This document shows positions 3,963 through 47,618 of a stretch of 48,080 nucleotides of DNA, piece after piece. Positions within the stretch are counted from its first letter, which is position 1. Each line of letters starts with the position of its first letter. Made by a program: the position numbers and the translations under genes. The stretch is from contig NIVC01001460.1 in assembly GCA_002269645.1 (NCBI GenBank), positions 1 to 48,080 on the forward strand, read 5' to 3'. A model generated the notes under the pieces. The model was not told the origin of the DNA. It saw only the letters and a program-made list of their open reading frames with translations, and did no database searches. This stretch comes from Macrostomum lignano (Eukaryota).

Positions 3963-5927
3963 TTGCAGAAGGGGATTTCCCTTCCGTAAAGCGTGAGCGG
4001 CCGAATCTGCCACTTGGTCCTGCTGGTGAACATGATCGCTGCGGTCTTAGTCTCAGAGAGCCTTAAACCACAGCGGTCCGCCCATTGCTCAGCGGCGTAG
4101 ATGAAGTTCTGAAGAAGGTCCCTGAGGGTATCAGGGGACGGACCAGATGCCACCGCGGTGACATCGTCCGCATATCCAACTTTCAGAATGGGGTCAGGCC
4201 GAACATCCCGGAGGAGCTCATCGATGACCATATTCCAGAGAACTGGAGACAGCACCATACCTTGCGGGCTACCTTTGCAGACGATGACCGTCCTCTGGTA
4301 GTCCAGCAGACTGGCGGTGGCCGTGCGATGGCTGATCATGTACATGATCCATCTGGTGAGATGTGAGTGCGTTTGCCTCTCACAAAGAGCTCTTCGGAAC
4401 GCCTCGAAGAGGATGTTATCGAAGGCGCCAATGATGTCCAGGAAGATCCCCAGAGCGAAGCCGCAACCAAGCACGGCCTTCTCAAGTTATCGACCAGGAC
4501 GTACAGCGCGATTTCAGTGGAGCGACCCGCCCGAAAGACGTGCTGGTTCTCGCTGGAAGGCTTGTTCTTCAGCTCTACGGAGAGAAGGCGCCACAGCACC
4601 AGTCTCTCCATCAGCTTGACCAGGGAGGAGGTCAGGCTGATCGGTCTGAAGGATTTGATAGAATGGCAGTCCGGGCGGCCTGGCTTAGGGATAAAAATCA
4701 CCTTTGCCTCGGTCCATGCCTGCGGAACATAACGAAGCGTGATGCACGCCCGAAAAAGGCTGCAAAGTTTACGCAGGAAGCCTGGGCATTTAACCGCCTC
4801 TCTTAGAATGGCAGGTACGATGCCGTCGGACCCTGGGGCTTTGAAAGGTTTGAAGGAGTTAGCCACTCTCACGATGCGGTCCGTGATGATAGAGGCAGCC
4901 AGCGCGTGACCTCCCTCCGAGTGATCCGGAGTGGTCGGGCTAGCTGGCTCGTTGGGGAAAAACGCAGTGAGCATTTCATCAAGCGTTTCCCCTGGGTTGT
5001 CCGTGGACGTACCGTTGGTGCGTTTGACTGAGGAAAGCTTAGAAATTTTGTCCAGCGTAAGCGCTTTCGCAATTCTGGAGGTGGGGCGTGAGCCCTCTAG
5101 CTCCTCGCAGTATTGTCGCCATTTTTGAGCCTTTGCATTCCTAACCTGCCTTTTTCAACTCATGGATTGCTTCATGATAGGCGGTTTGGTCCGCTGGGCT
5201 CTTAGTTTTAGTTGCTCTGCGGTGGAGTCTCTTAGCTCTGCGACGGAGGCCAGATTAATGCCGGTGCTGCCCCAGTGAGTATGGTGGGCGTTGATGTCGC
5301 CGGCAACCATAAGCTCGTAGTTTTTGGCACAGCAGAGCTCCACCAGCGTAGCGAGGGCTGTGGGACGACCGCAGAATCGCCTGTTAGGTAGACCGAGGCT
5401 ATGAGGGTGGTCTTCCCAGGAAGGAGGTCCTCAGATTGGATGACGCAGATGTCCCTGTTAGACAGGTCCGATCTGAGCCACGCACTGAACATGTTGACCG
5501 AAAAGATGCAAGCTCTGGGAGGCTGGTTGGCCTCGCGAAGGTATGTATAAAAACAGTTGTAGCTGGCAGGGGCGTTTTGAGGCTTACCTCTAAGAGTCCA
5601 GGGTTCCTGGACGAAGATGAGCCCTGGCGTGTCGAGCCCGGCGTGACGCATAAGGTTGACCGAGGCTGCAACGCAGTGTTGCAGATTAATCTGCTAGCAA
5701 TGGATTCCCTGGCTGCTGATCATTATCATGCAGTTGGGGAATCGGTGAGCAGGTCATCCTCCTCCTTTTCAGGGGTGGTTGGCCCTCAGATCTCCATGGG
5801 AGTTTCAGCGTCCTCGGCAGTTAGGGTGGCTGCGGAGTCCTCCGCGGGTATGAGCCCAGCATGGACGTTACCGTCGCCTCCCCTACGTGCTTCGGTGCTT
5901 CACTGCCCGTCCCCTCTGCCTCGTCGG

Positions 5928-8369: not shown

Positions 8370-11238
8370 ATGCGAGCCCGACTCCGCACGGTGACCGGTG
8401 CCGCTCAGGAGGTGGCTGGCATCACGAGAACTCACGGCTTGCTGCACATATTCCTGTCCAGAAGCACAGCTAGACGGCTCTTCTGGCTGCTTCTGTTCGT
8501 AGCTGCCCTGATCGGCTGCACCGTCCACCTGGCCAAGTTGGTGCAGAAGTTCACCGAGCACTCCGTTGAGTCGCAGCTGAAGCTGAGGAGCGAACAAGCC
8601 CAGTTTCCCGAGGTCACAATCTGCAACTTCAAGCCCCTTTCTGCAAGCGTAGGTCCTAATATTCTTGTAAGCAAATACTTTCCGACTTTCTGGGGCAATT
8701 TCGTCAACTGGTTCAAAGAGGACACCCCGAAGCGCCCGCAAGAATCGGATGAAAGCTATGAAAGCCGACTTGAGACGGTGTGCAAGAAGGTCCTAGACGT
8801 GATGTGGGTGTCGGACGACACCAGAGACATCTCCCACCTCGACGAGACCATGCTGCTGCGATGCCGCTACAACAACGAGCCATGCAGTTACAAAAACTTT
8901 TCGCTTGTCCAGACGAGCCGGTTCTGGAACTGCTACACGTTCCACCCGGACCCAAAGCAGTCGTCCAGCGGTTCTGGGGGCAGAGGAGCCAAGTTGGACA
9001 TGGTTCTCTTCACCGATGGATACATTGGCTCTTCTAGTTTTACCTACCGTCCCGAATTTTCTAATATTATTTCAAAACTAGTATGTCTTGGTCGATTGGC
9101 TTTCAATATGATAGCTATAAGCCGGCTGCTGAACAACAACCAACCTCAGTCGAATGGATTGCGAATTTTCTTTCACGAAGCAAAAAGCTACCCGTTGACT
9201 GGTACGTATTATTTAAAAAATAGATTTTTTGCCTAGTAAGGTTTTACTTTGCTTAGAGGGTTTATAATTGTCTTGATTTAGAACTGCAATACTTTCCAAA
9301 TGCTCGAAAACTTCGAAGGTTCTATAAAAATGAACGATTCATCGAGCAAAAGATTCCAAATGCTCACTTTAGCTTTTATCGCTAAAACCTTTTACCCATG
9401 CTAAACTGCAGACGCCGAGTTCGTAGACGTGGCCTCAGCCAGAAGCACCTCCATCAAACTCAGGCCGATCCACAACCGGCTCGTGTCGACGCCGAGTCGC
9501 AGGTGTTCCGAGCCTCCTTTAGAAACCATCAACTACGTCAGATACTTCTCCAACGCCTCGACGAACGTTGTTAGCAAGGAGTACTTCAAATCCATTTCAG
9601 ATTTTGTATTCGAGGCACAGCAGAGCATCCTGCAAAGCAACTGCGGCTGCTACTCGCACCTGCTTCCGTTCTCGGTGAACACGAGCGACCTGTGTTACTT
9701 CGCTCCACCGCAGAATTGGATAACCCCATCAGATGCTGTGCTCAAAAGAATCAGCTGCCATGACCTCTGGTTTGAACACGCACAGAGGCGAGGTCAGGAG
9801 CTGGTGAAAGAGTTTCAGCACCGGATGCGGTGCGATTTTACGCAGCAACGGCCTTGGCAGCAGAGCCGCAGCTGGCCCCCGTTAAGCGCTATTCAAGAGA
9901 TCTCAGAAGAACTGATAGCGCCGCTGGTCAGACATGGAATGAAGTTCAGGCGGAGCAGGGATGGAAAAAAGCAGCACATGATAAAAAAATTTCTACTTTT
10001 TTCCAGAAAGGAACATGTATTAATGCATCTTCTTGAGCAGGACTACTGGAATTGCACGGCTTGGTTCAGTTATAATAGAACTATTGATAATACTAACACT
10101 TCCACACTCAACGAGCTTTTGGAAGAATACCTCGAGTCAGCACCGTACTGCCTTCAGCGTCGCTCATTGTCCAAAAACCTGGCAGCAGTCAGCATCAACT
10201 TGCAGAGTCCTGCGGCGGACGCTTACGAAGAGAAGTACAAATACCACTGGACTGAGGCTCTGTCGGAGGTGAGAGCTGCATTTCTGTTGCAATATTCTCG
10301 CAGGCTGCAGGTGACCAGACCCGCCTAGACCCGCTAATTTTCATGCGCATTTTAAAAAACGGCCTTAGCCCCTCCGTCCCGCCCTGGTTCCCTTAGCGAC
10401 ACTGAGCTGCTCCGATCTGCCATTTTTTTTACCTCGTAAAATGCTAGCTAGCCCCACTACAAAGCTGCTTACATGTAGAAATTAGGTTGAGCAAACTGAG
10501 CTGCGCGAGCCTCAGAGCCGATTGGGTCGCGAGTCCTCCCAGTAAGCTACCGTCTTCCCATGGGTTCTCACCCGCTCCAATTGGCATGAGCTACCGTCTT
10601 CCCATGGGTTCTCACCCGCTCCAACTGGCATGAGCTACCGTCTTCCCATGGGTTCTCACCCGCTCCAACTGGCATGAGCTACCGTCTTCCCATGGGTTCT
10701 CACCCGCTCCAATTGGCATGAGCTACCGTCTTCCCATGGGTTCTCACCCGCTCCAACTGGCATGAGCTACCGTCTTCCCATGGGTTCTCACCCGCTCCAA
10801 TTGGCTTGAGCTACCGTCTTCCCATGGGTTCTCACCCGCTCCAACTGGCATGAGCTACCGTCTTCCCATGGGTTCTCACCCGCTCCAATTGGCATGAGCT
10901 ACCATCGGGTGGCCATCCGCTTGCAGCTTACTCCTGAATGACTACGGAGTGACCGAACGCTTTGCAAGGTGCCGCCTCTTTGTCTCGGTGCTCAGTGCCC
11001 AGCTAACCAGTGCCCGAGCCCCACAGCAACACGGCAGCAGGAAGCTGCAGAGACCCCAAACCAGACATCTGCTCAAATTCGAGCACTTCTCCTCGAAATC
11101 CCTCAGATCGGTGGAGCTCTGGGACTTTGGCTCGGCATCAGCGTCGTGAGCACCTTCGAGCTGCTTGAGTTCATCTATATTCTGGTGCAGAGGTGCAGGA
11201 GAAACGATAGCGACTCGGATAGCGAAGAAGAGTCCTGA
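8370..11238 (+). CDS. DEG/ENaC (ASIC/FaNaC superfamily) ion channel subunit; exons 8370-9201, 9412-10268, 11107-11238
   Basis: N-terminal HG motif (TRTHGL), TM1 (LFWLLLFVAALIGCTVHL), FPEVTICN, CRYNNEPC...NCYTF, GLRIFFH, and TM2 with GGALGLWLGIS (GxS filter). GT-AG junctions are phase-compatible (1, then 0) and give one open frame. Confidence 0.92.
10545..10903. repeat. 44-bp minisatellite, ~8 copies, in DEG/ENaC intron 2
   Basis: Unit AGCTACCGTCTTCCCATGGGTTCTCACCCGCTCCAATTGGCATG, near-identical copies. Confidence 0.95.
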
Positions 11239-12192: not shown

Positions 12193-12580
12193 TTCTATCC
12201 AGCAAAAACACTTCGTGCTCACCAATGCTAGACCTTATCAATCTTATCTGAGGTCACTGGGGAAACTATGTAGCTACCGGTAAGGCCATCAATTTCCACT
12301 TAGGCAAAATTGAATTCCCTATTGGAAAATCTGGATGTTACAAATTTTACATCTTGAAATTGGTGAGTTGTTGAGAAATGAAATTAAAAAATGGCGAGTT
12401 CAAGTGTATAGTTTTCAATCAGTCAATCAATCACCCATCAAGCGCTTGAGAAAATTAGATCAAGAACACTCAATCAGAGGCTTCATGACGATTTCCAATT
12501 TGTCGCTAATGCTAAAAAACGTGAAATATAAGCGGTGGCAGGGGGCCGCTTTCCAAACTGCAAATCTTCGCCGCATCGCG

Positions 12581-13609
12581 ATGGCCGAACCGCATCAGCA
12601 GATGCTGCTGTTCCTGCTTCTCGGGAGCCTGCTGCTTGTTCACGCTGAATGCCGCTCCGCCATAGCCAAGTACGCTGTTGTCAGCGCTAGCCAGTGCCTG
12701 AACAAGTCAAAGTCGGTGTGGCAGATCAGCTCCGGGCGCTCCTCTTCAATGCTCGACTGCTTCATGTCGAGTCGGTCGTTCCGTCTCGGCAGCATCGGCG
12801 TGGTGCAGTGGAACAAGCGAGACGCCTCGTGCGCGCTGTTCCGCTTCGGTGAGGTGTGCCGCCTGCTCAACTTGACCAGCTCGTCTACTCCGACTGAGGG
12901 AGTGGCCGCTGAGAGCACCTGCGAGACCGTGGTGGATTCGGAGTACGACGCGATCGCTGCGAACGAGCACTTCAGCGCTGTGTGGGTCGGAGACAGGGGA
13001 CCGGCGCTGGAGAACCTGGTGTGCGGCTTCGAGGGACAGAGGAACCCCGTTAAGTCGCTCAATGTGACCTGGACGAGTGAGGGCGCTCGCATGGACGGAG
13101 TCTCGTCTCGGCTGTGGGTGGACGACCCCACAGGTCTGGACTTCACGGCGTCCTACACCTGGGTGCCGCACCTGAAGAGAACTCCCGGAAGGCGGAGCTA
13201 CATGTCATGGGGCACTTTTGACAGCGCCAGCAAAGAGGAAATTCAATTTTTTGAGAAGAAATCGCTAAATCTATGCTTAAAGTCAATTCCACTAACGAAA
13301 ATTGTCTCCGGATCTGTCCTGCCCGCCAACCCTGACCGATTCTTCATTGTCGGTGTGGTCCGGGACACGGCCGCAGGCAGGATAAAATTCTTTGTCGATT
13401 CGGCTTTTCTGCGCGAGGAAACAAGTTTTGCTGCTTCAAATACGACTGCAAACAGTGGGAAGAGTTTCTGCTTGAAGATCGGCTGGCAGACTGTTTCTTC
13501 AGGCCGGAGCCTGTTGCTCAACGGAGTCATCCGGGCTGTCGCCGTGACAAGTCGGGTTCTGACTGAGGATCAGATCCGGATGCTTTTCCATGAGCAACTC
13601 GAATACTGA
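12581..13609 (+). CDS. Secreted 342-aa protein: signal peptide, PAN/Apple-like domain, LamG/concanavalin-A-like lectin domain; intronless
   Basis: Hydrophobic leader (MLLFLLLGSLLLVHA); Cys pattern SQC..MLDC..WNKRDASCALF; C-terminal ARMDGVSSRL...IKFFVD...LKIGW...LNGVIRAVAVTSRVLTEDQIRMLF typical of the LamG_3 fold. ATG 12581 chosen over 12335 because GC-rich coding composition starts there. Confidence 0.75.
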   Translation: MAEPHQQMLLFLLLGSLLLVHAECRSAIAKYAVVSASQCLNKSKSVWQISSGRSSSMLDCFMSSRSFRLGSIGVVQWNKRDASCALFRFGEVCRLLNLTSSSTPTEGVAAESTCETVVDSEYDAIAANEHFSAVWVGDRGPALENLVCGFEGQRNPVKSLNVTWTSEGARMDGVSSRLWVDDPTGLDFTASYTWVPHLKRTPGRRSYMSWGTFDSASKEEIQFFEKKSLNLCLKSIPLTKIVSGSVLPANPDRFFIVGVVRDTAAGRIKFFVDSAFLREETSFAASNTTANSGKSFCLKIGWQTVSSGRSLLLNGVIRAVAVTSRVLTEDQIRMLFHEQLEY

Positions 13610-16835: not shown

Positions 16836-17324
16836 TCCCCCTGTGACACTTAGAAAATCAAGTTTGCTTTTTAAAGTTACAGTACTTTGTATAATTTTAA
16901 TCTTTAACGATCAAACGTTTTTAAAGTGATCTGCGAGCTTGAGAAACCTGACCGGCTTCAATTTTAATGTGAATATTCAAGGTGAATATTTAGTCCCAAT
17001 GCTGATAAGACACTGTACTCGTAGTTACAATGGCTGACCACTCGCTCATGCAATTCTTTTTTAGGGTCAAAAATTGACCTTAGACGTTAGACTACGACGC
17101 AGTGCTCATGTATATGCACAGAGAACCTGATGACTGATATGCTCGCTTGACTGAGACAGTGAAAGTTTTGCATTTATAAGTTTCAGTCAGTTTAATGCCC
17201 GGTCGCGTCAATCGATTATAGCCACTGATTTGAAAGCAATTTCGAATATACATGTACATGTAAATTTGCGCACTACTCCACGTTTTTAACAGTTTTTAGC
17301 ATCTTAGCTACTGAGGGTCTGCAT

Positions 17325-18232
17325 GGGAGGCTGGCCCAGCAACTGAGAATCTGGGAGGCTGGCCCAGCAACTGAGGATCTGGGAGGCTGGCCCAGCAACT
17401 GAGGATCTGGGAGGCTGGCCCAGCAGCTGAGGAGGATCTGGGAGGCTGGCCCAGCAACTGAGGATCTGGGAGGCTGGCCCAGCAGCTGATGAGGATCTGG
17501 GAGGCTGGCCCAGCAACTGAGGATCTGGGAGGCTGGCCCAGCAACTGAGGATCTGGGAGGCTGGCCCAGCAACTGAGGATCTGGGAGGCTGGCCCAGCAA
17601 CTGAGGATCTGGGAGGCTGATCCAGCAGCTAGCTGATAAGGATCTGGGAGGCTGGCCCAGCAACTGAGGATCTGGGAGGCTGGCCCAGCAACTGAGGATC
17701 TGGGAGGCTGGCCCAGTAACTGATGAGCATCTGGGAGGCTGGCCCAGCAACTTAGGATCTGGGAGGCTGGCCCAGCAACTGAGGATCTGGGAGGCTGGCC
17801 CAGCAACTGAGGATCTGAGAGGCTGGCCCAGCAACTGACGATCTGAGAGGATGGCCCAGCAACTGAGGATCTGGGAGGCTGGCCCAGCAGCTGAGGATCT
17901 GGGAGGCTGGCCCGGCAACTGGGGACTGAGGATCTGGGAGGTTGGCCCAGCAACCGATGATCTGGGAGGCTGGCCCAGCAACTGAGGATCTGGGAGGCTG
18001 GCTAAGCAACTGAGGCTCTGGGAGGCTGGCCCAGCAGCTGATGAGGATCTGCGAGGCTGGCCCAGCAACTGAGGATCTGGGGGGCTGGCCCAGCAACTGA
18101 GGATCTGGGGGGCTGGCCCAGCAACTGAGGATCTGGGAGGCTGGCCCAGCAACTGATGAGGATCTGCAAGGCTGGCCAAGCAACTGGGAATCTGGGAGGC
18201 TGGCCCAGCAACTGAGGATCTGGGAGGCTGGT
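17325..18232 (-). repeat. 28-bp minisatellite, ~31 copies; same family as SCAMP intron 4, opposite orientation
   Basis: Plus-strand unit GGGAGGCTGGCCCAGCAACTGAGGATCT is the reverse complement of the unit at 30189-30768. Confidence 0.95.
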
Positions 18233-18695: not shown

Positions 18696-26389
<7,694 letters not shown>

Positions 26390-26776: not shown

Positions 26777-29700
26777 ATGAGTGATTTTGGAGATAATCCG
26801 TTTGGTGATCCTAAAGCTAGCCAGAGCGCGGATCCCTTCTCTGTAAGTTGTAAATTCAAAAAAGTCCAGAATTTATTTATTGGCAAAATGTATTTATTAG
26901 TACTTATAAAGCATATATTAATTTAGAAACCTTTTTATTCTACTAAAAAATAGAAAGCATCATACTTAATTTTTACTAAAGGAAAAGCAATACTTCATAC
27001 TTTACTACATCACAGATAACTCAGGTCATTTAGCAAATTTAGCAATTTAGCAAAAAATCATCTTTAGTAAATAGGAGAGCAGATTCTTTGTTATTATTGA
27101 ATAGATATTTTTGTATCATAAAATTGTAGTAGTAGGTTAGGCCTATGCTATAGAGGTAGAAAGCAATTTCTTTATTCTAACCATATTGGTCTTGTATGAA
27201 GTAGAGTTGGATCAAACATGACATTAATTAACAATTAATTAGCCCTAATTTGTAAAATTTACAAAAGAAATACTTGTAAAATTGTAATATAACCTATTAA
27301 AAAGGTCATTTTTATTTTTAACCCCCCAAATAGTAGGGGCCTAAGGTCTTTTTTAAAACATTAGATCTTAAAAACAAAAAGTATACAAGATCCCTGACCC
27401 TCATTGTGATTGTGTCTTTGTTAATTGGCCTATATAAATAACTTTATATTTAATGTATTTCTACAAAAAATATAAAAAAATTAATATTATGAAAGATAAA
27501 AATATCCTTTTACTTTTGAGTATATCTTAGGCTATTGAGGTATGATTTTAAATTGGTTTTGGATGGCTAGTACAACTTTTAATTTATCATTCAGCTTTGG
27601 ATACTAATATAATTTGAGAATATATATTTTGCATAAAAATAGTTTCATTTAATGCAGGCAATGCCAGGCATCCATTTTGTAAATCTAATGCCATGGTAAA
27701 AGTCTATGAAAAAAAAGATTATAGCTTAGAACTTGTTGCATACTTTATTACAACTTTTATGTCAAATGAAACAGAAATTCTAGCATCCATTGAAAACTCT
27801 GCTATTACATCTTTATAGCTTAGAGCTATACTCAACATAGAAAGGACTTATAAAACACCTCTCATATAGGGATCTATAGCATTAAATTGCAAACTTGGTA
27901 GAACTACATATAAAATAGAGAGTTGAAGTTTTTAGCACACATGCATATTCATCTTTGGCATATTTAAACTCATGCCTACTAAATCAGGACCCATCAGTGC
28001 AACAGGCAGCAAGAGGTTCTCAGGCAGCCACTGTTCAAGACTTCAATCCATTTGAGAAAGGTCAGGAAAGATCCGCGGTTGCTGGGCCAGCTGTTCTCCC
28101 AGCAACTGGTGGAGGCCCACAGCAGGCGGCCCCACCACCTCCATACACGTCCTCTGCCCAGCAGCCCGCGCCATCCAAGATCAACACTGACGAACTGGAA
28201 AAGCGTCAGCGAGAACTCGACGCCAAGGCCAGGGAATTGGAGAGGCGAGAAGAGGAGCAGCGGCAGAGGGAGCAGGATCTGTCTGCTGGCGGATGTGAGT
28301 GAGCTGTGCATCAACTGGGAAACTTTCAGATCCCAATTCACTCGGGACATTCAGATCCCAAAAAACTCTGGGCATGCAGATCCCAAAATCGTCACATCGG
28401 GATGTTCAGATCCCAAAACAGTCGGGGCATTCAGATCCCAAAATCGTCATATCGGGATGTTCAGATCCCAAAACACTCGGGGCATTCAGATCCCAAAATC
28501 GTCATATCGGGATGTTCAGATCCCAAAACACTCGGGGCATGCAGATCCCAAAATCGTCATATCGGGATGTTCAGATCCCAAAACAGTCGGGGCATTCAGA
28601 TCCCAAAATCGTCACATCGGGATGTTCAGATCCCAAAACACTCGGGGCATTCAGATCCCAAAATCGTCACATCGGGATGTTCAGATCCCAAAACACTCGG
28701 GGCATTCAGATCCCAAAATCGTCATATCGGGATGTTCAGATCCCAAAACAGTCGGGGCATTCAGATCCCAAAATCGTCACATCGGGATGTTCAGATCCCA
28801 AAACACTCGGGGCATGCAGATCCCAAAATCGTCACATCGGGATGTTCAGATCCCAAAACACTCGGGGCATGCAGATCCCAAAATCGTCACATCGGGATTT
28901 TCAGATCCCAAAACACTCGGGACATTCGGATCCCAAATCATCACTCGGGACATTCAGATCCCTAAACACAAAAAAAATTTATTTTTCAGTCCGTGCGAAC
29001 AACTGGCCGCCACTGCCTTCATTCTCCCCAATCGGGCCCTGCTTCTATCAGGACATCGATTTAGAAATACCACTGGAGTTCAGAAGGATTGTACAGTTGG
29101 CCTACTACCTGTGGATGGCTCACGCCTCTGTGCTGCTCATTAACATAATTGGAGCGATTACTTATTTTATTGCGGTGAAGGAGAACAAAGCCAATGCTGG
29201 CACAGTGTTTGGCGTATCGCTTATTGTGTTCGTCATCTTCACTCCAGCCTCCTTTGTGTGCTGGTTCCGCCCGCTGTACAGGGCCTTCAAGTGAGCTCTG
29301 GCTGACATACAGAAACTAGGACAGGCATGAGAGATAGGCAGACACTAAAAGAGACAGACAGACACTAGGAGAGACAGACAGACAGATACTATGAAAGGCA
29401 GACAGACACAATTAAAGATAGGCAGACACAATTAGAGACAGGCAGACACAATTAGAGAGAGGCAGACACAATTAGAGACAGGCGGACACAATTAGAGACA
29501 GGCAGACACAATTAGAGACAGGCAGACACAATTAGAGACAGGCAGACACAATTAGAGATAGGCAGACACAATTAGAGACAGGCAGACACAATTAGAGACA
29601 GGCAGACACAATTAGAGATAGGCAGACACAATTAGAGACAGGCAGACACAATTAGAGACAGGCAGACACAATTAGAGATAGTCAGACACAATTAGAGACA

Positions 29701-30952
29701 GGCAGACACAATTAGAGACAGGCAGACACAATTAGAGACAGGCGGACATAATTAGAGACTAGCAGACACAATTAATTAAAGACAGGCAGACACAATTAGA
29801 GACAGGCAGACACAATTAAAGACAGGCAGACACAATTAGAGACAGGCAGACACAATTAAAGACAGGCAGACACAATTAATTAAAGACAGGCGGACACAAT
29901 TAGAGACAGGCAGACACTAAGAGAGACTCACAAAAAACTAGAAGAGTTTTAACTATCTCTTCCAGAAGCGACAGCAGCTTCAATTTCTTCCTGTTCTTCC
30001 TGATGCTGTTTGTCCAATTCTCCATACTGACCATCCAATGCCTCGGCCTGGACTATCTGGGCTCCTGCGGCTGGATCAACGCCTTCGTCATGATGAAGGA
30101 GAGCACAGCTGTGGGCGTCCTGATGCTCATCATCGCCATCGCTTTCACCGCTTTGGCTGCGTTGGACCTTCTGCTGCTGGTTCAGGTGAGTCCTCAGTTG
30201 CTGGGCCAGCCTCCCAAATCCTCATCAGTTGCTGGGCCGGCCTTCCAGATCCTCAGTCGCTGGGCCAGCCTCCCAGATCCCCAGTTGCTGGGCCGGCCTC
30301 CCAGATCCCCAGTCGCTGGGCCAGCCTCCCAGATTCCCAGTTGCTGTGCCAGCCTCCCAGATTCCCAGTTGCTGTGCCAGCCTCCCAGATCCTCAGTTGC
30401 TGGGCCAGTCTCCCAGATCCTCAGTTGCTGGGCCAGCCTCCCAGATCCTCAGTTGCTAGGCCAGCCTCCCAGATCCTCAGTTGCTAGGCCAGCCTCCCAG
30501 ATCCTCAGTTGCTGGGCCAGCCTCCCAGATCCTCAGTTGCTGGGCCAGCCTCCCAGATCATCAGTTGCTGGGCCAGCCTCCCAGATCCCCAGTCGCTGGG
30601 CCAGCCTCCCAGATCCCCAGTCGCTGGGCCAACCTCCCAGATCCCCAGTCGCTGGGCCAACCTCCCAGATCCCCAGTCGCTGGGCCAGCCTCCCAGATCC
30701 CCAGTCGCTGGGCCAACCTCCCAGATCCCCAGTCGCTGGGCCAGCCTCCCAGATCCTCATCAGTTGCCGTGCCGCCCGCAGGTGCACCGCATTTACCGCA
30801 GCACAGGCGCCAGCTTTGCCAAAGCTCGTCAGGAGTTCAGCCAGGGCGTGCTGACCAACGAGGCAGTCAGGGGCGCCGCGGCAGATGCTGCAACAGCCAC
30901 CGCCAGATCTGCCTTCACGGGTGGGGGCAGCGGCAGCGGAGGTCGGTACTAA
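26777..30952 (+). CDS. SCAMP: Secretory carrier-associated membrane protein (SCAMP), 354 aa; exons 26777-26842, 27988-28294, 28990-29290, 29966-30185, 30782-30952
   Basis: N-terminal NPF/DPF motifs (MSDFGDNPFGDP...DPFS|DPSVQQ...DFNPF), coiled coil, NNWPPLP, E-peptide CWFRPLYRAFKSDSSFNF, four TM segments, VHRIYRSTGASFAKARQEF. All junctions GT-AG and in phase (1065 nt). Confidence 0.96.
28325..28962. repeat. 55-bp higher-order repeat (25-bp + 30-bp subunits) filling SCAMP intron 2
   Basis: TCAGATCCCAAAACACTCGGGGCAT alternates with TCAGATCCCAAAATCGTCACATCGGGATGT. Confidence 0.95.
29340..29915. repeat. 20-bp minisatellite filling SCAMP intron 3
   Basis: Unit GACAGGCAGACACAATTAGA. Confidence 0.95.
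30189..30768 (+). repeat. 28-bp minisatellite filling SCAMP intron 4
   Basis: Unit CTGGGCCAGCCTCCCAGATCCTCAGTTG, ~20 copies, starting right after the GTGAGT donor. Confidence 0.95.
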
Positions 30953-33459: not shown

Positions 33460-36400
33460 ATGGCCATGGAAATGGAAGAGTTCTTCGAGGCCAGTAATCA
33501 GCCTCAAGGCTGCGGTGGAAACTCCGAACAGTTCCTCAGCAGGCTGAGCAGTCAGCTACGACCTTATTTGGATGCCGCGGATGCCCTGAAAGCAGACAAG
33601 AGCAGCAGTGCTGTGAATTACCCCAGCATCGTTGTGATCGGAGACCAGTCTGAGGGCAAGTCGACGGTGCTGGAGGCGATATCCGGGGTGGAGCTGCCTA
33701 AAGCCACCAGTCTGTGCACCAGGTGTCCCATCCAGCTGCGTCTGAGGGAAGGCGACGAGAAGATTGAGATCAGGTAAGACCAAGATGTTCTGTGTGTGTG
33801 TCAGTGCCGAGTCTAAATTAAAAAATTGCTGCATGTATATGATAACTCCAGTTACGGGCAAGGCAGCAGCCTTCATCCGAAGAAAATTTCGCGTAACGAC
33901 ATTGCCCGCGAAATATCTATCTCCCAGGAGCACATTGTGTCATCTAGCGGGCTGGAGATCACTGACGAGACAATTTCTGTGCTCATCCAGACGCCTGACG
34001 GGTTCAACCTAACTCTGATTGACCTGCCAGGCATTAACAGGTGATTTTACAGGACCCCGGATCTGTATTTGCTGCTGTATTTTTCCACATGTATACTCAG
34101 CGACATCGAAAAGTCGCCATTACAAAAGATTCCATCTGTGCTTGCCACTTCTAGAGTTGCAGGTAAAGTCTCTCAATCTTTGCGAGGGATGCAACTCAGC
34201 TACGCCGTGGCAGACTTGAGTTGAGGAATGAAGTGGGGGGAGCGGTGTGCGAGGGTTGGACGGATTAAGGCTACCCCGATCAGTTTTCTTGTATCTTTTA
34301 TTTCAGAATAGTCTAAGGAAAATTGCTCACTGGCGCATAGAGTGGCGACTTTTCAATGTTGCTGAGTATATTCTGTTCTATTTTTTGTAAGACCCTGCTC
34401 AACCCAACTCAAATCAACTCAAGCCTACTCAACCCCCCAATCCCACTCTAACCAACACAACCCAACTCAACCCCTGTCAACCCAACTTTACTAAATCAAT
34501 TAAATTCAGGTTCTAACTATAGCTAACCCTAATTTTTCAATATACAAATAACCCTACGTGTAAACATGACAGAATTTGATAGATAATTTCCAGATGAGTT
34601 AAGATAAGCTGTCACTTTTACTCCGAAAGCTTGAAACGAAAATACGGGTAAAATATTTGCAGGGACACGAACGACATCGAAGAACAAACCGTGAAAATCA
34701 TCGAGCGCTACATAAAAAGCGAACAGACAATCATTACCGTGGTGTTCAAATGCACTACTGACGTTAAAGCAGTCAAGGCTTTCCAGCTCGCTAAGAAGTT
34801 CGACCCCGAGGGCAAGCGGACCATTGGTGTGATCAGTCACTGCGACACGCTGAGTGAGAACTGGGAGGAAGCGATTAGCAAGCTGGTGTCTTCACAATCA
34901 GGAGTCTTTATTCCTGTCGCTTGCCGAGACTACATTTCAGGCGGGACTTCCGCAGAGGAGAATGTGCTGTCTCAGCGTGCAGAGCCTGAAACATTCAGCT
35001 CCCGTTAGGACGAAAGCCTGGCCATTAGCATTTTGGGATCTCTATGGGGAGAAATGGGATAAATGAAAGGAATAGGAATTTTAAACGAAATAAGTAATCA
35101 AAAGTGTTCCAGATCTTGACAAGTTGAGAAAGCATACAAAAGATTTTGCGGGTGGAAACGCTAAAAGTAAGAGTTATACAGCTGTACAGCTGTGCTCTCA
35201 AAACTTATTTCACAAAGAATTCTTTTTTGTAAAGCGCTAAATGGGGTTTTGCCATGGACGAACTCCTTTAGAAAATTACACAATGGTAGATTGTGTAGTA
35301 TGCAACTGAGTTGAATAATGGCCAAAACTCGAGTGCGCGTAGCGCACGAGTGTCTATGGCCATTATTCACCGAAGTTGCATACTACACAAGTGCATTGTA
35401 TTTATACTTTCACTCAGCGCTCAGTCATTATTCCACCATTTTGCGGCCATTATTCCACACTTCTGTCGCTGTCATTATTCCACACTTTTTATTATGCTTC
35501 AATTGGTTGTTTTAAGAGTTGTTTTACCCATAGACGACTGAGTTGTGTGGCTTAGTTTGACCATAGACACACTGTGATGAGTGCTGATTTCGCTTGCGTC
35601 TTGCAAGAAATCAGGAAAGCGAGTAGTGGGAGAAAAAGCTATTTGTCTTGTCAAACAACCATGGCTGGTGCATCTCGTCGAACAGCCGCGCTTATTAATT
35701 GAAAAAATCTTCCTGTCGACGACTGAACGAATCGTGCGGCGCTACCTAGGAAGAAAACGCGACCATGCAGTCTTCAACGCCTCGACGGCTATAAGCGATG
35801 CCTCAAAGCGGCCAATCGATTCAGTCGAGCAGCCGACAGTCCTAAAAAATCCCAGCTTGGATACTGCGGTACCAAAGAAGCTCATCAGACGAAGCTCATC
35901 AGTCACAAGCCAACGACAAATACGTGCATCTTTCAAATGGTAAGTTCGGTAACTATACTTGAGCACCTGTATTTCTCTTTCATAGAAAAAATTCAACATA
36001 GATCAACGCCTTTTGCAGTGCCAAATCATCAGGCTAAAGTGTCGAGCATCTTTGGAAACTGCGCCTTTGAGAACTGTGTATGTTTCACTTTGGGTGACAA
36101 ATTGATTTTTACATTGTCAAATTTTGACTACAAACTGATGAACTGCACTAGCTGTGACATTTATTATTAACTCTTTTCGTGTAGCTGGTACTTTAGTTTT
36201 AATGATTTTCCTTTTTGTTCATTTACTTCTTGTTGTTCTGTATTTATTAACAAAAATACTGAGCGATGGATTTTTTCAATCCAAATGTCTATAGTACACA
36301 TCAAAACTGTGGAATAATGGCCAAAATATTTTTTCATTGCGTCTGGGTAAAAGTATAATTACAATGGAAATAGAAACAACTTAAACCTTTGAAGCGATAC

Positions 36401-38968
36401 GCTCGTAAGTTGCTTTTGTTACCGTCTCTTTTTAGCGAAAACGAACCGAACATCAAAACCAGCTAAATGACTTGCTCGAAGGAGAGCCGACAGAGGCGGC
36501 CGACTCCAGGAAAGTAGCATGCGCTCTGCTCAAAAGATTTGCTCAAGAGTTTGAGGAGCAGGTGAAAGGAGAGCACAGAACGGAGAAAAATGTTTTATTT
36601 TCCGAATGTGAAAGAAACTTGGACGAATTCGAGCAATCCATTCGACAACTGACGGAGCCGAACGAGGACAATGATGAACGTGAGTTTTCGGTGGACGAGC
36701 TTCTATTGTTTTTTCGCATCATCAATCACGCTATCTTCGATAAAATGAACATTTTGACAAATTACAACTGCAAATAACTTTGTTTCTTTAATCAGAAACA
36801 TCAAATTGGTTTCTAAGGTTACCTGACCTGACTTACTCTTAAAGGTAATTCTTTATTGGTTGTACTCGTAGTATAACAGTTATACTGATCGAGATTCAAT
36901 TGGAGACCGTGCAACATTCCGACGTACTCGAATTCGATGGAAATCGCTGGTAAATTAGCATTTTTAAATTAAACCGGCGGATAACACTGGCTAAAAGTCA
37001 GTGTAATGTACAAATACCCGTTTACCATGCCGCGACGTTGATACATGTTGTAGTCTTCGAATTCGTGTCAGCCGACGTCGCTGAGGTCACCGGAAGGAGG
37101 GTGAGGTTTGCGCTGATTAGAGTTGATGGTGAAGCGTGCAGCTGAGGAAAGAATTAATATTGAAAGACCAATTAGAAAGGTGTGAGAGGCAGAGTAAGAG
37201 ATAAGAAGACCCGAATATCGAACCCCAGAAACCAAGAGTGGACGGACAGTAATCAGAGAGACGCGGACGAGAGCAGATGAGTTTAGGAGATGATTTCGAG
37301 AGTCGCGACAAACGGAAAAGGGCCAAAAACGTCCAGCCGCAGGAGTGACACCGCATGGATAGTAGGACGTACATGTAAATACTCTGCGACTGGCTCCATG
37401 AAGATTTTCCAGAAGTGTTTTCTTGAGAAGCTAAACTTTTTTTGCTTTCTGTTTTGACAGAAACCTTTTGACAATTTTTTTTTCTGAGAAGGCCGTCATA
37501 GCGAGAAACAACCAAATCTTTAAACGCATTTAGCTCCAGTCATTGTCGATCTCTGGATGCAATTCAATGCCGCTCCCTGTAATATTCAAGCACACATTAA
37601 CAGCAGTGCACAACTGAACTATTTTTCCGCTCCCGCGCCAATTTACAGTGCTGAACCAAGTCAAAGAGGAGTTCAAAGACCAGCGCGGTTGCGAGTTCAA
37701 ACAGATGGCCCATGTATTTCCGGTACTGCGCCGCATCGTAAAAAATCTGGTCAATGATAAATTCTGGCCATTGACAATGGGTGTATTCGAGAAAATTTGC
37801 ACCGCAGTGACTGACTACATGGATCAACTGGCCGACGTGAATTTTGGTAAATATCCGCCCTTCAGAGACTACATGAAGGAGAGGCTGACTAAAAAAACAA
37901 CTACGATCAAGACGGATGCCCGCAAGTGGCTCGAAAATGTCTTGAAAATGGAGGCGACCTGCGTTCAGACCCGGAACCGACAGTTTATTCGAGTTGGGTG
38001 AGAGAGTTTTTACTACTTTCAACATTCCATTTTTTGTTTATGATACATGTAAATGTCATTGGCATTGCCAAAATTTAACGAAACTCTTTGTCAACGTGTG
38101 AATATTTTTACGGTAGAACAGAAGCATAAAACAGCTTATGTATGAAATTATTGAAAATCCTATAGTACTTTGCATAGGCTTCAAATACTTGAATTTTCGT
38201 TCATTAATGGAAGGCATCAGGTGATCTGTTTTAAATTCAATAGTACGAACAGTCAGTACGAACTCTACAATCATGACGCTCTTGTGACTGTACAATCGTA
38301 CTACATTATAACGTTGTATCGTCGTGTAACCTGACTTAAATAGCCGTCTACTGTAACAAATAGACGGATATCACCGCAGGACATAACATTTTTTGTTTAG
38401 CTTAAGTACACTTCGTATGTCATTTGGCCGTCGGTGTAATGTAAAATAGTGATTTTCCATTGCCTGCGATTTATTACTCTAGATAGTTGCCCTGAGAATT
38501 ACGAATTTATACTCGTACTACAGCGCAAACCACATAATAAAACCTCTCGATCGTAGTCAAACTCCACCTGCACCGCGAGAAAGCTTCTCCAGTGAAGACC
38601 TCCCGGATCATGAAGAAGATGGAGAGCACAGCGCCGCTGATGACATTCCACAGTCGTTTAGACAGAGCATGGACGAAAATGAGCTATTAATCTATGTGCT
38701 TCTAACAAAGTACCTGCTCATTCTCGCTGATCAAACTGTTGACAATGTGGCCAAAACAATCCAGTACCAGTTAAGCTACAAGCTGGCGGAAGAGATGGAC
38801 TCGATTCACGCACTCCTGCCCGAGTCCGACACTCTGCATGGGTTGATGAAAAATCCGGAAAAAGAGGATAAGCTACGCAAAGTCAGACAACAACTCAAGT
38901 TTTGGAGCAATCTGGATGACAAACTAACGCAGCAGACGTCCGAATACAAGAGGGAATCTCGAGCTTGA
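33460..38968 (+). CDS. Mx: Mx-like (myxovirus resistance / dynamin superfamily) large GTPase; exons 33460-33773, 33852-34040, 34663-~35003, [unresolved], 36436-36679, 37649-37997, 38557-38968
   Basis: BSE1 [13 protein letters not shown]; G1 GDQSEGKST; G2 TRCP; G3 LIDLPG; G4 position ISHCD; VACR; stalk QRGCEF...NFGKYPPF...[10 protein letters not shown]; no PH domain; [15 protein letters not shown]...[11 protein letters not shown]. Five of six junctions are phase-compatible; the link between 35003 and 36436 is not resolved. Start codon uncertain (33460 preferred). Confidence 0.85.
35291..36322. mobile_element. Hairpin-bearing insertion in an Mx intron; possible Crypton-like relic
   Basis: 100-bp imperfect palindrome at 35291-35390; perfect 15-bp inverted repeat GGCCATTATTCCACA (35445-35459) / TGTGGAATAATGGCC (36308-36322); peptide fragments LDTAVPKK...FKW and [11 protein letters not shown] inside. 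Family assignment is a guess. Confidence 0.35.
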
Positions 38969-43494: not shown

Positions 43495-44805
43495 AAGCAT
43501 TGGTGACCACAGCATTGGTGAACACAGCATTGGTGAACACAGAATTGGTGAACACAGCATTGGTGAACACAGCATTGGTGAACACAGCATTGGTGAACAC
43601 AGCATTGGTGAACACAGCATTGGTGACCACAGCATTGGTGACCACAGCATTGGTCACCACAGCATTGGTGACCACAGCATTGGTGACCACAGCATTGGTG
43701 ACACACAGAATTGGTGAACACAGCATTGGTGACCACAGCATTGGTAAGCACAGCATTAGTGAACACAGCATTGGTAAACACAGCATTGGTAAACACAGCA
43801 TTAGTGACCACAGCATTGGTGAACACAGCATTGGTGACCACAGCATTGGTAAACACAGCATTGGTGACCACAGCATTGGTAAACACAGCATTGGTGACCA
43901 CAGCATTGGTAAACACAGCATTAGTGAACACAGCATTGGTAAACACAGCATTGGTAAACACAGCATTAGTGAACACAGCATTGGTGACCACAGCATTGGT
44001 GACCACAGCATTGGTAAACACAGCATTGGTGAACACAGCATTGGTGAACACAGCATTGGTGAACACAGCATTGGTGAACACAGCATTGGTGAACACAGCA
44101 TTGGTGACCACAGCATTGGTGAACACAGCATTGGTAAACACAGCATTGGTGACCACAGCATTGGTGACCACAGCATTGGTAAACACAGCATTGGTGACCA
44201 CAGCATTGGTGACCACAGCATTAGTAAACACAGCATTAGTAAACACAGCATTAGTAAACACAGCATTAGTGAACACAGCATTGGTAAACACAGCAATAGT
44301 GAACACAGCATTAGTAAACACAGCATTGGTGACCACAGCATTGGTGAACACAGCATTGGTAAACACAGCATTGGTGACCACAGCATTGGGTAAACACAGC
44401 ATTAGTGAACACAGCATTGGTAAACACAGCATTAGTAAACACAGCATTAGTAAACACAGCATTAGTAAACACAGCATTGGTGACCACAGCATTAGTAAAC
44501 ACAGCATTAGTGAACACAGCATTGGTAAACACAGAATTATGAACACAGCATTAGTAAACACAGCATTAGTGAACACAGCATTAGTAAACACAGCATTGGT
44601 GACCACAGCATTGGTGAACACAGCATTGGTGACCACAGCATTGGTGAACACAGCATTAGTGAACACAGCATTGGTAAACACAGCTTTAGTGAACACAGCA
44701 TTAGTAAACACAGCATTGGTGACCACAGCATTGGTGACACAGCATTGGTGACCACAGCATTGGTGACCACAGCATTGGTGAACACAGCATTGGTAAACAC
44801 AGCAT
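43495..44805. repeat. 15-bp satellite, ~85 copies
   Basis: Unit CACAGCATTGGTGAA with GAC/AAA/TAG variants. Confidence 0.97.
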
Positions 44806-44811
44806 TTGCAG

Positions 44812-47618
44812 GCTGCATGCGATATATTGCTTGGCCTCTGCGTATGGCTGTGCAGCCCAGCCAATGGGAGCAGACCTTGCCGAGGACAGAGTTAAGACAA
44901 GTTCATTATAAAAAGAACAGCTTTGGGTGAGTGAAGAAGTTTAAAGAGGAGTTGCAAGCATGTCAAATACTGTCGTAAACCAAAGTCTAAATGGAAGCTG
45001 TTCTGTTCCGCCTTTCGGCGCGGCGGCGACCTGTGGAGTATATTCAGTAACGTTGCAATTTATTTATATAATTATTTGAGAGAAAATCCATATCTTATAA
45101 ATACAGGAATTAATTTTATTCGTGAAGTTGCTGATAGATCGACGAGGAGGAAATATTGCTACAATTTTTACTGCCATCTTTAGTGTAGCGGGAGGTCATT
45201 TAATGAACTATTACACAGAAGATCCCAGTAGGATATTTCAAACCATTGACAATATTACTCAATATATAGTAAATCGAAACTCGAATAATTAGTATATAAA
45301 TTGCAAATAAACTGAAGCTACTTCAGTAGCTCCTCCCAATTTTTATTTTTTAAAATAATAATAATAATAAATAAATAAAATTAAAAAAGAAAAAAAAAAA
45401 AAAAAACAAAAAACTATTATTTTTATTTAAAAAAATAAATAATGCGGATCCGCAGACAGCAGCCTTCCCGTGGCGATCCGTGTGAGTAGCTTTCACAGTG
45501 ACTGCCAAAGCAAAATGCCTGCAGGCGTCACTGCAAAGCGAAACCAATGGCTGTCTAACAGAACAATTGATGATAATTCCGGGTGGCTTAATTAATATGT
45601 AAAAATCAGTCTTTAAGCATATGGTTATACAGTGTAAATATATGAAATAAGGTTCATGAACTAGATTGACTTTGCTTAACCAATTTTCACTAAACTTGCA
45701 CCTATCAGCGTTCAAAATGCTGATATGCTGTTACAAACTATCATAGTATTTAATGTTAGACCCATCCATTTGCCTGCACTAAAACAGTCACACAGACCCA
45801 GCGTGCCCTCTCTGTGTTAATTCATCTAACTAGCTAACTATGCAAACAAGCAAATAAGATGGGTGGGGCGAAAAAATATCACGCCACCACCCCAACACTG
45901 CCCCCAGCACAATGCTTCTCCACTGCCGAGTTGAGTAAAGTTTGAGCTCAAACCTAAGAGAAGGACTTGTCTCAGCTTTTCGAAGTTTCTGTCTGCCGAG
46001 GCAGAGGGTAGCAGGCGTGTAAGGTAGTTGGTGTGAGAGGCCTTCAGAGACTACCTATGATAACCTGTTACAGTACCATTTTGTGGGATCATCAATAAAT
46101 GTTTTTCCCGCAAAGTTACGACTCTTTATTTGTTATTTGTTGTGTAGCTATGCAGACTGCTTAAAAATGTGCATTAATTTTTTTAAGTAGTATGAAAGCT
46201 TATTACATACATGTAGCTTATACAGTACATATTACTGGAAGTAGCGAAACCATTTTTTTCTCTTTCCTACTCGACACATTGCAATATTGGGAGAATCTGC
46301 TACTGCTAATCTGCTATTGAAGATGAAGCGAACTCCCTGATTTCCGATTTGCCACCTCCCTGATTTCCGATGTGCCACCTCCCTGATTTCCGATGTGCCA
46401 CCTCCCTGATGTCCGATGTGCCACCTCCCTGATGTCGATTTAATTGCCACCTCCCTGATGTCCGATTTGTCACTTCCCTGATGTCCGATTTAATTGCCAC
46501 CTCCCTGATGTCCGATTAATTGCCACCTCCCTGATGTCCGATTTAATTGCCACCTCCCTGATGTCCGATTTAATTGCCACCTCCCTGATGTCCTATTTGC
46601 CACCTCCCTGATGTCCGATTTAATTGCCACCTCCCTGATGTCCGATTTGTCACTTCCCTGATGTCCGATTTAATTGCCACCTCCCTGATGTCCGATTTAA
46701 TTGCCACCTCCCTGATGTCCGATTTAATTGCCACCTCCCTGATGTCCGATTTAATTGCCACCTCCCTGATGTCCTATTTGCCACCTCCCTGATGTCCGAT
46801 TTAATTGCCACCTCCCTGATGTCCGATTTGCCACTCCCTGATGTCCGATTTAATTGCCACCTCCCTGATGTCCTATTTGCCACCTCCCTGATGTCCGATT
46901 TAATTGCCACCTCCTTGATGTCCGATTTAATTGCCACCTCCTTGATGTCCGATTTAATTGCCACCTCCCTGATGTCCTATTTGCCACCTCCCTGATGTCC
47001 GATTTAATTGCCACCTCCCTGATGTCCGATTTAATTGCCACCTCCTTGATGTCGATTTAATTGCCACTCCCTGATGTCCGATTTAATTGCCACTCCTTGA
47101 TGTCCGATTTAATTGCCACCTCCCTGATGTCCGATTTAATTGCCACTCCTTGATGTCCGATTTAATTGCCACCTCCTTGATGTCCGATTTAATTGCCACC
47201 TCCCTGATGTCCGATTTAATTGCCACCTCCTTGATGTCCGATTTAATTGCCACCTCCTTGATGTCCGATTTAATTTCCACCTCCCTGATGTCCTATTTGC
47301 CTCCTTCCTAAAGTCCGATTTGCCTCCTTCCTGATGTCCGATTTGCCACCTCCCTGATGTCCGAATTGCCACCTCCCTGATGTCCGATTTGCCCCCTCCC
47401 TGTGCTGCCTATCGCTGACACGCCTGCTGGCAACAGATTCGGCTTTTGCGACCCTGGCCTCCAACTGGTGCACAGCTACTACTCCTCAGCGAAGGCTGGA
47501 AGCAGGACTGCGGGCTGCGACTGCCACGGGATGGCTGTGCTGGATCTCATGGGCTGCTACACATATGATCCACAGACCGTGCAGCACTGGGAGCTGTGCA
47601 GAGCAATGCGTGTAGGAG
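44812..47618 (+). CDS. Putative exons of an unidentified gene: 44812-44926 and 47437-~47618 (possibly also ~41263-41453)
   Basis: 44812-44926 lies between TTGCAG and GTGAGT and is open (GCMRYIAWPLRMAVQPSQWEQTLPRTELRQVHYKKNSFG). 47437 follows CAACAG in the matching phase (FGFCDPGLQLVHSYYSSAKAGSRTAGCDCHGMAVLDLMGCYTYDPQTVQHWELCRAM) and has GC-rich third positions. Each exon directly follows a tandem array, as in the confirmed genes. No family recognised. Confidence 0.4.
46336..47402. repeat. 27-bp minisatellite, ~39 copies
   Basis: Unit GATGTCCGATTTAATTGCCACCTCCCT. Confidence 0.97.

Follow-up and report, generated by a model that had tools for sequence, protein, structure and literature searches.

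An Mx-like gene of the dynamin superfamily was analyzed at positions 33460..38968 (+ strand) of contig NIVC01001460.1 of the flatworm Macrostomum lignano (assembly GCA_002269645.1); "the window" below means the whole stretch of DNA analyzed, 48,080 nt long. Whichever reading of the locus holds, the gene can securely be assigned to an Mx-like subfamily that is specific to flatworms and has [ST][HN]CD at the G4 nucleotide-binding motif. The copy in the window is broken between its G domain and its stalk, and we lean slightly towards regarding it as an unprocessed, recently inactivated duplicate, young and decaying. What is new is a second, apparently undescribed Mx-like subfamily in M. lignano, with His or Asn for the near-universal G4 Lys and an acidic P-loop; the abandonment of the G4 Lys in both Mx-like lineages of this species; and a copy whose duplication, disruption and further decay document birth-and-death turnover. 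Such turnover is typical of defence gene families. Langley et al. 2025 (PMC11789081) showed Mx to be older than interferon and reported six or more Mx proteins in M. lignano. Because these invertebrate Mx proteins were already published, a Mx-like gene in M. lignano was to be expected, and the interferon independence suggested by an earlier sequence-based annotation (the original prediction) is nothing new.

The gene was delimited from reading frames and GT-AG splice boundaries as a spliced gene on the + strand; a bacterial-style interpretation of the list of open reading frames (ORFs) was considered and rejected. Its features are given below (P and L numbers are our handles for proteins and genomic loci; BSE, bundle signalling element).

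33460..38968, + strand: whole Mx-like dynamin-family gene copy, ATG at 33460, TGA at 38966-38968, broken between G domain and stalk
33460..33773, + strand: exon 1, with BSE helix 1, G1 and switch I; equals residues 1-105 of database protein P0121
33559-33591, + strand: BSE helix 1 motif (11 residues), in exon 1
33640-33666, + strand: G1 P-loop GDQSEGKST, in exon 1
33694-33729, + strand: switch I motif, in exon 1
33852..34040, + strand: exon 2, mid G domain, ending in G3 at an intron position common to paralogues P0271 and P0273
34021-34032, + strand: G3 DLPG, at the end of exon 2
34663..35008, + strand: exon 3 as annotated, with G4, the G5 region, the last G-domain helix and TAG
34835-34846, + strand: G4 SHCD (agt cac tgc gac), in exon 3
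34916-34930, + strand: G5 region VACRD, in exon 3
35006-35008, + strand: TAG ending the 282-aa database protein, in exon 3
35009..35166, + strand: damaged tail of ancestral exon 3 (BSE helix 2 coding), ending at a conserved strong donor, AAA/GTAAGA, in the phase of exon 4
35287..36360, no strand assigned: 1,074-nt insertion in intron 3, missing from the second copy, L003; probably a mobile element
36436..36679, + strand: exon 4, where the stalk starts; its first position coincides with the beginning of database fragment P0278
37649..37997, + strand: exon 5, stalk helices, carrying QRGCEF
37681-37698, + strand: conserved stalk motif QRGCEF (RGxE type), in exon 5
38524..38968, + strand: exon 6, with the last stalk helix, the C-terminal BSE helix and TGA
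38558-38659, + strand: acidic, Pro-rich loop at the position of Mx loop L4, in exon 6

Exon 6 has an alternative in-frame acceptor, giving an exon start at 38557, which is used by the database fragments. The BSE motif, G1 GDQSEGKST, the VACR G5 region and the RGxE stalk motif, all named in the original prediction, were found. The G4 sequence SHCD was also correctly read, at coordinates (34836-34847) that are one base off.

That the gene is of Mx type was examined by sequence, domain and fold comparison. In the exon translation, Pfam detected Dynamin_N (PF00350, E = 3e-33) over residues 57-226 and Dynamin_M (PF01031, E = 1.3e-10) on exons 4-5; P0121 carries a precomputed dynamin-type G domain annotation as well. 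No PH, Fzo or other membrane-targeting domain was found by Pfam in the window exons, which gave just Dynamin_N, Dynamin_M and generic P-loop matches, and the absence of a PH domain, as originally predicted, is thereby borne out. GED (PF02212) had no Pfam match in the window exons and a weak match in paralogue P0273, and C-terminal helices are predicted in the model of P0001. When PDB sequences were searched with phmmer, Mx2 (6.9e-36) and Mx1 (1.8e-34) ranked top, above dynamin A (9e-26), Drp1 (~1e-21), dynamin-1 (~1e-20), Vps1 (~3e-19) and OPA1 (~1e-16), and SHCD aligned column for column with TKPD of both Mx proteins. The AlphaFold model of P0121 (282 aa) had a predicted template modelling score (pTM) of 0.81, with a predicted local distance difference test (pLDDT) above 85 in the G-domain core. 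With this model as Foldseek query, the five best matches, with 30-32% identity, were MxA/MxB; dynamin, Vps1 and Drp1 ranked below them. The Pfam, phmmer and Foldseek rankings thus agree with the original assignment of a Mx-type dynamin-superfamily gene in an invertebrate.

The closest full-length relative, P0001, is encoded by a 2.4-kb intronless transcript contig from a different sample (SRR30276804), and its model (pLDDT 87.8) shows a G domain, a BSE and a four-helix stalk. Foldseek aligned about 640 columns of the P0001 model with dynamin-1, MxB, Drp1 and MxA, and dynamin-1, Drp1 and MxB scored equally; at the level of predicted models, the full-length fold does not separate the dynamin, Drp1 and Mx families. 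A neighbor-joining (NJ) tree was built from 44 G domains (244 columns, 200 bootstraps), a set that included no animal Dyn, Drp1 or Opa1 sequences. The window gene and P0001 grouped with 99% support, and the addition of M. lignano P0122, P0271 and P0273 gave 88.5%. This clade was placed with Mx-like sequences (animal Mx, Mx-like proteins of fungi and algae, rotifer proteins) at 37.5% support, apart from the DRP3A/ciliate and Mgm1 groups and outside the core animal Mx clade, which holds the other M. lignano Mx proteins. These results indicate a Mx-like member of the dynamin superfamily rather than a Drp1/Vps1 type, weakly placed within the Mx-like group. A housekeeping fission dynamin (Drp1, Vps1 or classical dynamin type) could draw on the equal Foldseek scores of dynamin-1, Drp1 and MxB with the full-length model and on the 37.5% NJ support. 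We consider such an identity barely credible, since sequence scores favor Mx by 10-15 orders of magnitude and the G-domain fold matches are led by MxA and MxB. Moreover, the P-loop reads GDQS as in Mx-like sequences, where Drp and Mgm1 sequences have G[GS]QS; Pfam found no PH domain; and the gene lies in a lineage-specific, multi-copy, partly decayed family, whereas animals have conserved, single-copy Drp1 and Opa1 genes (PMC11789081). Drp1/Vps1 identity was rejected on the sequence and G-domain fold rankings, and the grouping with Drp1/Vps1 that had been named as speaking against a Mx assignment was not observed: the similarity rankings favor Mx, and the NJ placement among the 44 G domains compared, at 37.5%, was Mx-like.

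The nucleotide-binding motifs were then counted across all 257 alignable dynamin-family proteins fetched. The G4 Asp, which confers guanine specificity (PMC5084822), was kept in 257/257, and the G4 Lys, replaced by His in the window gene, in 229/257. His at this position occurred in 13/257 proteins, 12 of them in the clade of the window gene, and an acidic fifth residue in G1 in 14/257, 13 of them in the same clade. Within the clade, G1 is GDQS[DE]GKST, and G4 is SHCD in the window copies, THCD in the P0001, P0271 and P0273 types and TNCD in P0122. Molluscan, amphioxus, hagfish and fish Mx proteins have TKPD or TKMD at G4; the other M. lignano Mx proteins have TCPD and have lost the Lys too. 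The same unusual residues were found in three near-identical M. lignano predictions (P0121, P0269, P0270) and at a second genomic locus, L003. Sequencing error at SHCD was rejected, the motif recurring in near-identical copies, in L003 and, as [ST][HN]CD, in the subfamily. Nor is it common among the invertebrate Mx proteins in the set of 257: His at G4 occurs almost exclusively in the subfamily, and molluscan and amphioxus Mx keep the Lys. SHCD is, by sequence comparison, a subfamily character that the window gene has inherited and not one special to it. The idea of a divergent Mx paralogue with a non-canonical G4 therefore stands as regards His for Lys and the acidic P-loop, and does not stand as a peculiarity of this gene. 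One protein outside the clade, P0257 (647 aa), is the sole other case of His at the G4 Lys position (THVD); its P-loop is also odd (GAQSHGKSS), and it may be an independent case of Lys to His at G4.

The window gene keeps the P-loop Lys/Ser, the Gln-Ser of GDQS, the switch-I Thr (CTRCP) and DxxG, and both switch-I glycines of Mx are replaced. The Asp three residues past G4 is missing in the window gene (SHCDTLS) and in the subfamily; an Asp in the G4 loop (Asp211 in dynamin) touches the partner's guanine in trans (PMC5084822). The original prediction had proposed altered GTP affinity, specificity or turnover. Because the G4 Asp, P-loop Lys/Ser, switch-I Thr and DxxG are all kept, the sequence does not indicate a changed base specificity, and weaker or faster-exchanging binding is the most that may be read from it. 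The G4 Lys of N/TKxD is a consensus and is not universal, since GBPs and atlastins have RD. By analogy with general P-loop GTPase behaviour, GTP binding is probably kept, though weaker or faster-exchanging, and the contact between G domains in the dimer is probably altered in intact members. Because their phosphate-, Mg2+- and guanine-binding residues are all kept, intact members should still be GTP-binding, self-assembling mechano-enzymes.

Intact members of the subfamily are PAA93058.1 (P0271), PAA51860.1 (P0273) and A0A1I8JAZ3 (P0122) from M. lignano, together with the transcript P0001. They are full-length proteins of 633-699 aa with an unbroken exon 3, in contrast to the interrupted window copy. 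They share G1 GDQS[DE]GKST with the window gene and carry T[HN]CD at G4; P0271 and P0273 have DAPGF at G3, where the window gene has DLPG. P0001 is the sister sequence of the window gene, with 51% G-domain identity. At the loci of PAA93058.1 (L002) and PAA51860.1 (L004), all five intron positions match the window gene. PAA93057.1 and PAA93058.1 (cluster P0129/P0271) have adjacent accession numbers and lie on one 349-kb contig, L002 (NIVC01000034.1); this shared contig suggests that the THCD-type paralogues are arranged in tandem.

Among known proteins, Mx1/MxA and Mx2/MxB (PDB 3SZR, 4P4S-U, 4WHJ, 5UOT) are the best sequence and fold matches of the window gene. Vertebrate Mx shares with it the GDQS P-loop, TRCP in switch I, DLPG at G3, a G domain-BSE-stalk architecture without PH domain, an RGxE-type stalk motif and a disordered loop at the L4 position. 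The differences lie in G4 (SHCD versus TKPD), the P-loop residue (E versus S), the missing post-G4 Asp, the replacement of both switch-I glycines and a G-domain identity of only ~30-37%; moreover, the host is a flatworm without an interferon system, and the coding of BSE helix 2 is broken at the window locus. The M. lignano Mx proteins of the kind described by Langley et al. 2025 (PMC11789081), namely P0002, P0124, P0130, P0132 and P0134, come from the same species and are likewise multi-copy, but fall in the animal Mx clade of the NJ tree, separate from the clade of the window gene. Their G1 is GDQSVGKSS, without an acidic residue, and their G4 has Cys-Pro (TCPD) where the window gene has His-Cys. 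Dynamin, Drp1 and Vps1 belong to the same superfamily and share the overall fold and the logic of an assembly-stimulated GTPase. They are less similar in sequence, have G[GS]QS in the P-loop, carry a PH domain or B-insert where the window gene has the L4-like loop, and are housekeeping genes that are single-copy (Drp1) or conserved. The Paramecium dynamin-like proteins P0039, P0042 and P0045 also lack the G4 Lys (TQLD), but are Drp-type, unrelated to the clade of the window gene, and keep the post-G4 Asp.

Preservation of all catalytic G-box residues was an inclusion criterion of Langley et al. 2025 (PMC11789081). Set against it, the window gene keeps the phosphate-, Mg- and base-binding residues and has lost the G4 Lys and the post-G4 Asp. 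PAA93058, PAA93057, PAA51860, PAA51889, Mlig006255, Mlig010126 and Mlig026459 were not found in the supplementary files examined of PMC11789081, and no further paper in the literature collection searched ties M. lignano to dynamin or Mx. For these reasons the [ST][HN]CD subfamily and its motif variant appear to be undescribed. The intact paralogues offer natural variants for probing the roles of the G4 Lys and the trans Asp in the dynamin superfamily.

The state of the window copy was assessed from the exon structure of these paralogues. In L002 and L004, a further 64-65 codons of exon 3 follow G5, covering the last G-domain helix and BSE helix 2, before a phase-0 donor is reached, and the next exon starts at the equivalent of window exon 4; the corresponding span in P0001 is 63 codons. 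The window has a strong donor (AAA/GTAAGA) at 35166/35167, in phase with exon 4, but the distance from the first codon of the G5 strand to this donor is 260 nt, which is not a multiple of three. The frame entering exon 3 ends at TAG 35006-35008, the annotated CDS end of P0121. In the tail at 35009-35166, each of the three frames contains stops and the frame changes at least once; the entering frame has three stops, the TAG included. The continuous gene of ~620-650 aa that had been predicted is thus not present, as no frame is open to the donor at 35166/35167. A variant genetic code for TAG was rejected, since the sister transcript P0001 itself ends in TAG. The last 13 codons of the tail, read in the frame of exon 4, match the exon-3 ends of the paralogues (QKILR; shuffle p ~0.02), whereas the read-through translation after the TAG showed no significant likeness to relatives (shuffle p > 0.1). 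A missing exon was sought between exons 3 and 4 with tblastn and Smith-Waterman, using P0001, P0122, P0271 and P0273 against all frames of 34900-36480, and none was found. The gap between exons 3 and 4 is therefore explained by the longer exon 3 of the paralogues and not by a missing exon. In the P0001 model, residues 274-315 form one unbroken, confidently predicted helix, of which the segment missing in the window makes up the first half. Judged by the exon structure of the paralogues, the window does not code for a continuous three-helix BSE. The survey of paralogues and structure prediction proposed originally yielded a [ST][HN]CD subfamily and a Mx-like G-domain fold, together with a broken frame at the locus itself.

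The databases mirror this structure. Exons 1-3 up to the TAG are identical to P0121 (UniProt A0A1I8J103, 282 aa, 'Dynamin-type G domain-containing protein', M. lignano), which was found by an exhaustive HMMER search with the closest relative, P0001. Its 90% cluster holds two near-identical proteins, of 254 aa (P0269) and 296 aa (P0270); a search with P0121 as query returned nothing else close, and exact look-ups of P0121 and two window ORFs gave no contig. The stalk exons are represented in the databases by P0278 (262 aa, 'Dynamin_M domain-containing') and P0279 (BOX15_Mlig026459g1, 196 aa) alone. Every public prediction for the window gene is a fragment, and the gene is annotated just as 'Dynamin-type G domain' and 'Dynamin_M' fragments because its reading frame is broken at the locus.

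A second copy was reached via P0279. L003 (NIVC01001300.1, GCA_002269645.1) carries the SCAMP gene followed by the Mx-like gene, and these are ~98% identical to the window. Duplicated blocks of this sort are to be expected, since non-repetitive blocks with at least 95% identity make up 180 Mb of the Mlig_3_7 assembly (PMC5730564). The exon-3 tail of L003 is broken as in the window. Shortly before its TAG, L003 carries an additional 42 nt in frame, which correspond to the 296-aa P0270; the 1,074-nt insertion in intron 3 is absent from it. A single nonsense codon interrupts its G5 region, as reflected in the 254-aa P0269, and its exons contain four single-base gaps, of which P0278 and P0279 mirror at least two. 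The L003 copy is clearly dead. The GenBank annotation is transcript-based (RNA-seq, StringTie/TACO and TransDecoder; PMC5730564); since it gave just the 196-aa model, the 3' part of L003 is transcribed, with no long ORF found on it. In intron 2, both locus copies have a 279-nt element at 34092-34370 that resembles a miniature inverted-repeat transposable element (MITE), with 28-nt inverted repeats at its ends, and divergence is inflated nearby.

As in an unprocessed pseudogene, the frame of the window copy is broken relative to intact relatives and its introns are retained. Because the BSE helix 2 segment is disrupted in all copies seen, an inactivated duplicate is the likeliest reading. The window copy would then be one of several near-identical copies in the partly duplicated M. 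lignano genome, drawn from a small, fast-diverging Mx-like subfamily. Intact members of this subfamily combine a G domain, a three-helix BSE and a four-helix stalk without a PH domain; [ST][HN]CD for TKxD at G4 and the acidic P-loop residue are their two common derived features, and the post-G4 Asp is missing as well. Stops and a frame change have disrupted the part of exon 3 coding for BSE helix 2, and the product would at most be a 282-aa G-domain fragment, translated from an mRNA with a premature stop.

The divergence between the two copies weighs against inactivation. The coding exons of the window and L003 differ at 18/1,884 sites (0.96%), and introns and flanks, without the MITE-bearing intron 2, at ~2.1%, so that the coding value is lower (Poisson p ~1e-4). 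Eight coding differences are synonymous and 10 non-synonymous; the synonymous divergence (pS = 1.96%) is about the noncoding rate, and the ratio of non-synonymous to synonymous divergence (pN/pS) is 0.35 (one-sided p = 0.026), or 0.31 (p = 0.037) when only the stalk exons are taken. The expected neutral pN/pS of ~1 was thus not found. The 1.88 kb of window exons are free of the five extra lesions, all of which L003 carries, and the indel of 42 nt shortly before the TAG keeps the frame. The sequence comparison suggests that the window copy has been under coding constraint despite the shared damage. A pN/pS of ~1 is expected of old pseudogenes only. Nevertheless, since the tail damage is common to both copies, it should predate their split, and a fully neutral history would predict pN/pS ~1. 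Possible explanations are chance with small counts, gene conversion that spread the damaged tail, or continued use.

Continued use could take the form of intronisation, in which the damaged stretch is spliced out and a functional Mx-like protein of ~600-640 aa, with BSE helix 2 shortened or missing, is made; such a protein would come near to the one originally predicted. One route would be a 125-nt intron from GT at 35004 to AG at 35127-35128, followed by a 38-nt mini-exon at 35129-35166; the other would join an internal exon-3 donor straight to exon 4. Besides the low pN/pS at a neutral pS, stalk exons included, and the absence of lesions from the other window exons against five in L003, several details fit: the in-frame 42-nt indel lies beside the candidate donor, the TAG sits inside a possible donor (GTTAGG), the mini-exon retains QKILR, homologous to the paralogues, and the phases agree (phase-1 donor, one base into the mini-exon, phase 0 into exon 4). 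However, the splice sites able to bypass the damage are weak: GTTAGG is a poor donor and GAG/ a poor acceptor, the other in-phase candidate donors have no A at +4 and no G at +5, and every one of these donors faces competition from the strong ancestral GTAAGA. The product would be short of ~19 residues of a helix that is continuous and confident in the P0001 model, and no database protein spans exons 3 and 4. We regard this rescue as possible but doubtful.

Alternatively, the gene could have been split into a stand-alone 282-aa protein, consisting of the G domain and BSE helix 1, and possibly a separately translated stalk fragment. Between the copies, the G-domain exons have diverged least (0.59% versus 2.1% in noncoding sequence, p ~4e-4), the P0121 model has a complete, confident G-domain core, and P0278 begins exactly at exon 4; in M. 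lignano, trans-splicing affects ~39% of genes, and ~7% of transcripts are precursors that span several genes (PMC5730564). On the other hand, a stop 160 nt upstream of a strong donor is the usual configuration for nonsense-mediated decay, exon 4 has no Met, which would require a stalk-only protein to start inside exon 5, and no transcript contig encoding exactly P0121 was found. Dynamin-type G domains, moreover, require the BSE and stalk for assembly-stimulated hydrolysis (PMC5084822). A split gene is, in our view, quite improbable. A broader proposal, that the [ST][HN]CD acidic-P-loop proteins are a functionally distinct flatworm Mx-like lineage and that the window copy is still used through intronisation or as separate polypeptides, seems to us unlikely. 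If true, the loss of the G4 Lys and the trans Asp would alter the coupling of nucleotide binding to G-domain dimerisation, and the intronised or split window copy would be an unprecedented Mx/dynamin architecture. Recent inactivation of the window copy remains the reading that we slightly prefer.

The insertion in intron 3 (35287-36360) is flanked by an imperfect direct repeat, ATTACA(CA)ATGG, starts with a 100-nt hairpin (35291-35390) and has internal inverted repeats at 35438-35465 and 36302-36329. It contains a 120-aa ORF (35581-35943) without a Pfam match, and no further copy of it was found in the window or in L002-L004. The insertion is probably a non-autonomous mobile element. Elsewhere in the window, 3920-4974 on the - strand holds a retroelement remnant with reverse transcriptase. 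Its Pfam RVT_1 match is divided between two ORFs that overlap in different frames, which implies at least one break in the frame; GC-rich ORFs extend upstream of the remnant to ~7050. A 424-aa ORF at 12335-13609 (+ strand) has no Pfam match and contains a hydrophobic stretch resembling a signal peptide. The neighbouring genes are the following.

8370-10328, + strand: exon of an amiloride-sensitive sodium channel (ASC/ENaC)
24752-25108, - strand: exon of a cathepsin-D-like aspartyl protease
27955 to ~30100, + strand: SCAMP gene, directly upstream of the Mx-like gene, an order repeated in L003

Minisatellites are unusually dense between 7590 and 47402, a density that fits the ~15% tandem repeats reported for M. 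lignano. They include the arrays listed here.

20106-22612: minisatellite, 23 nt x 110
28338-28969: minisatellite, 55 nt x 11.5, inside the SCAMP gene region
43496-44806: minisatellite, 15 nt x 87
46349-47402: minisatellite, 27 nt x 41

The arrays at 17324-18231 and 30191-30759 are built from one 28-nt unit in opposite orientations.

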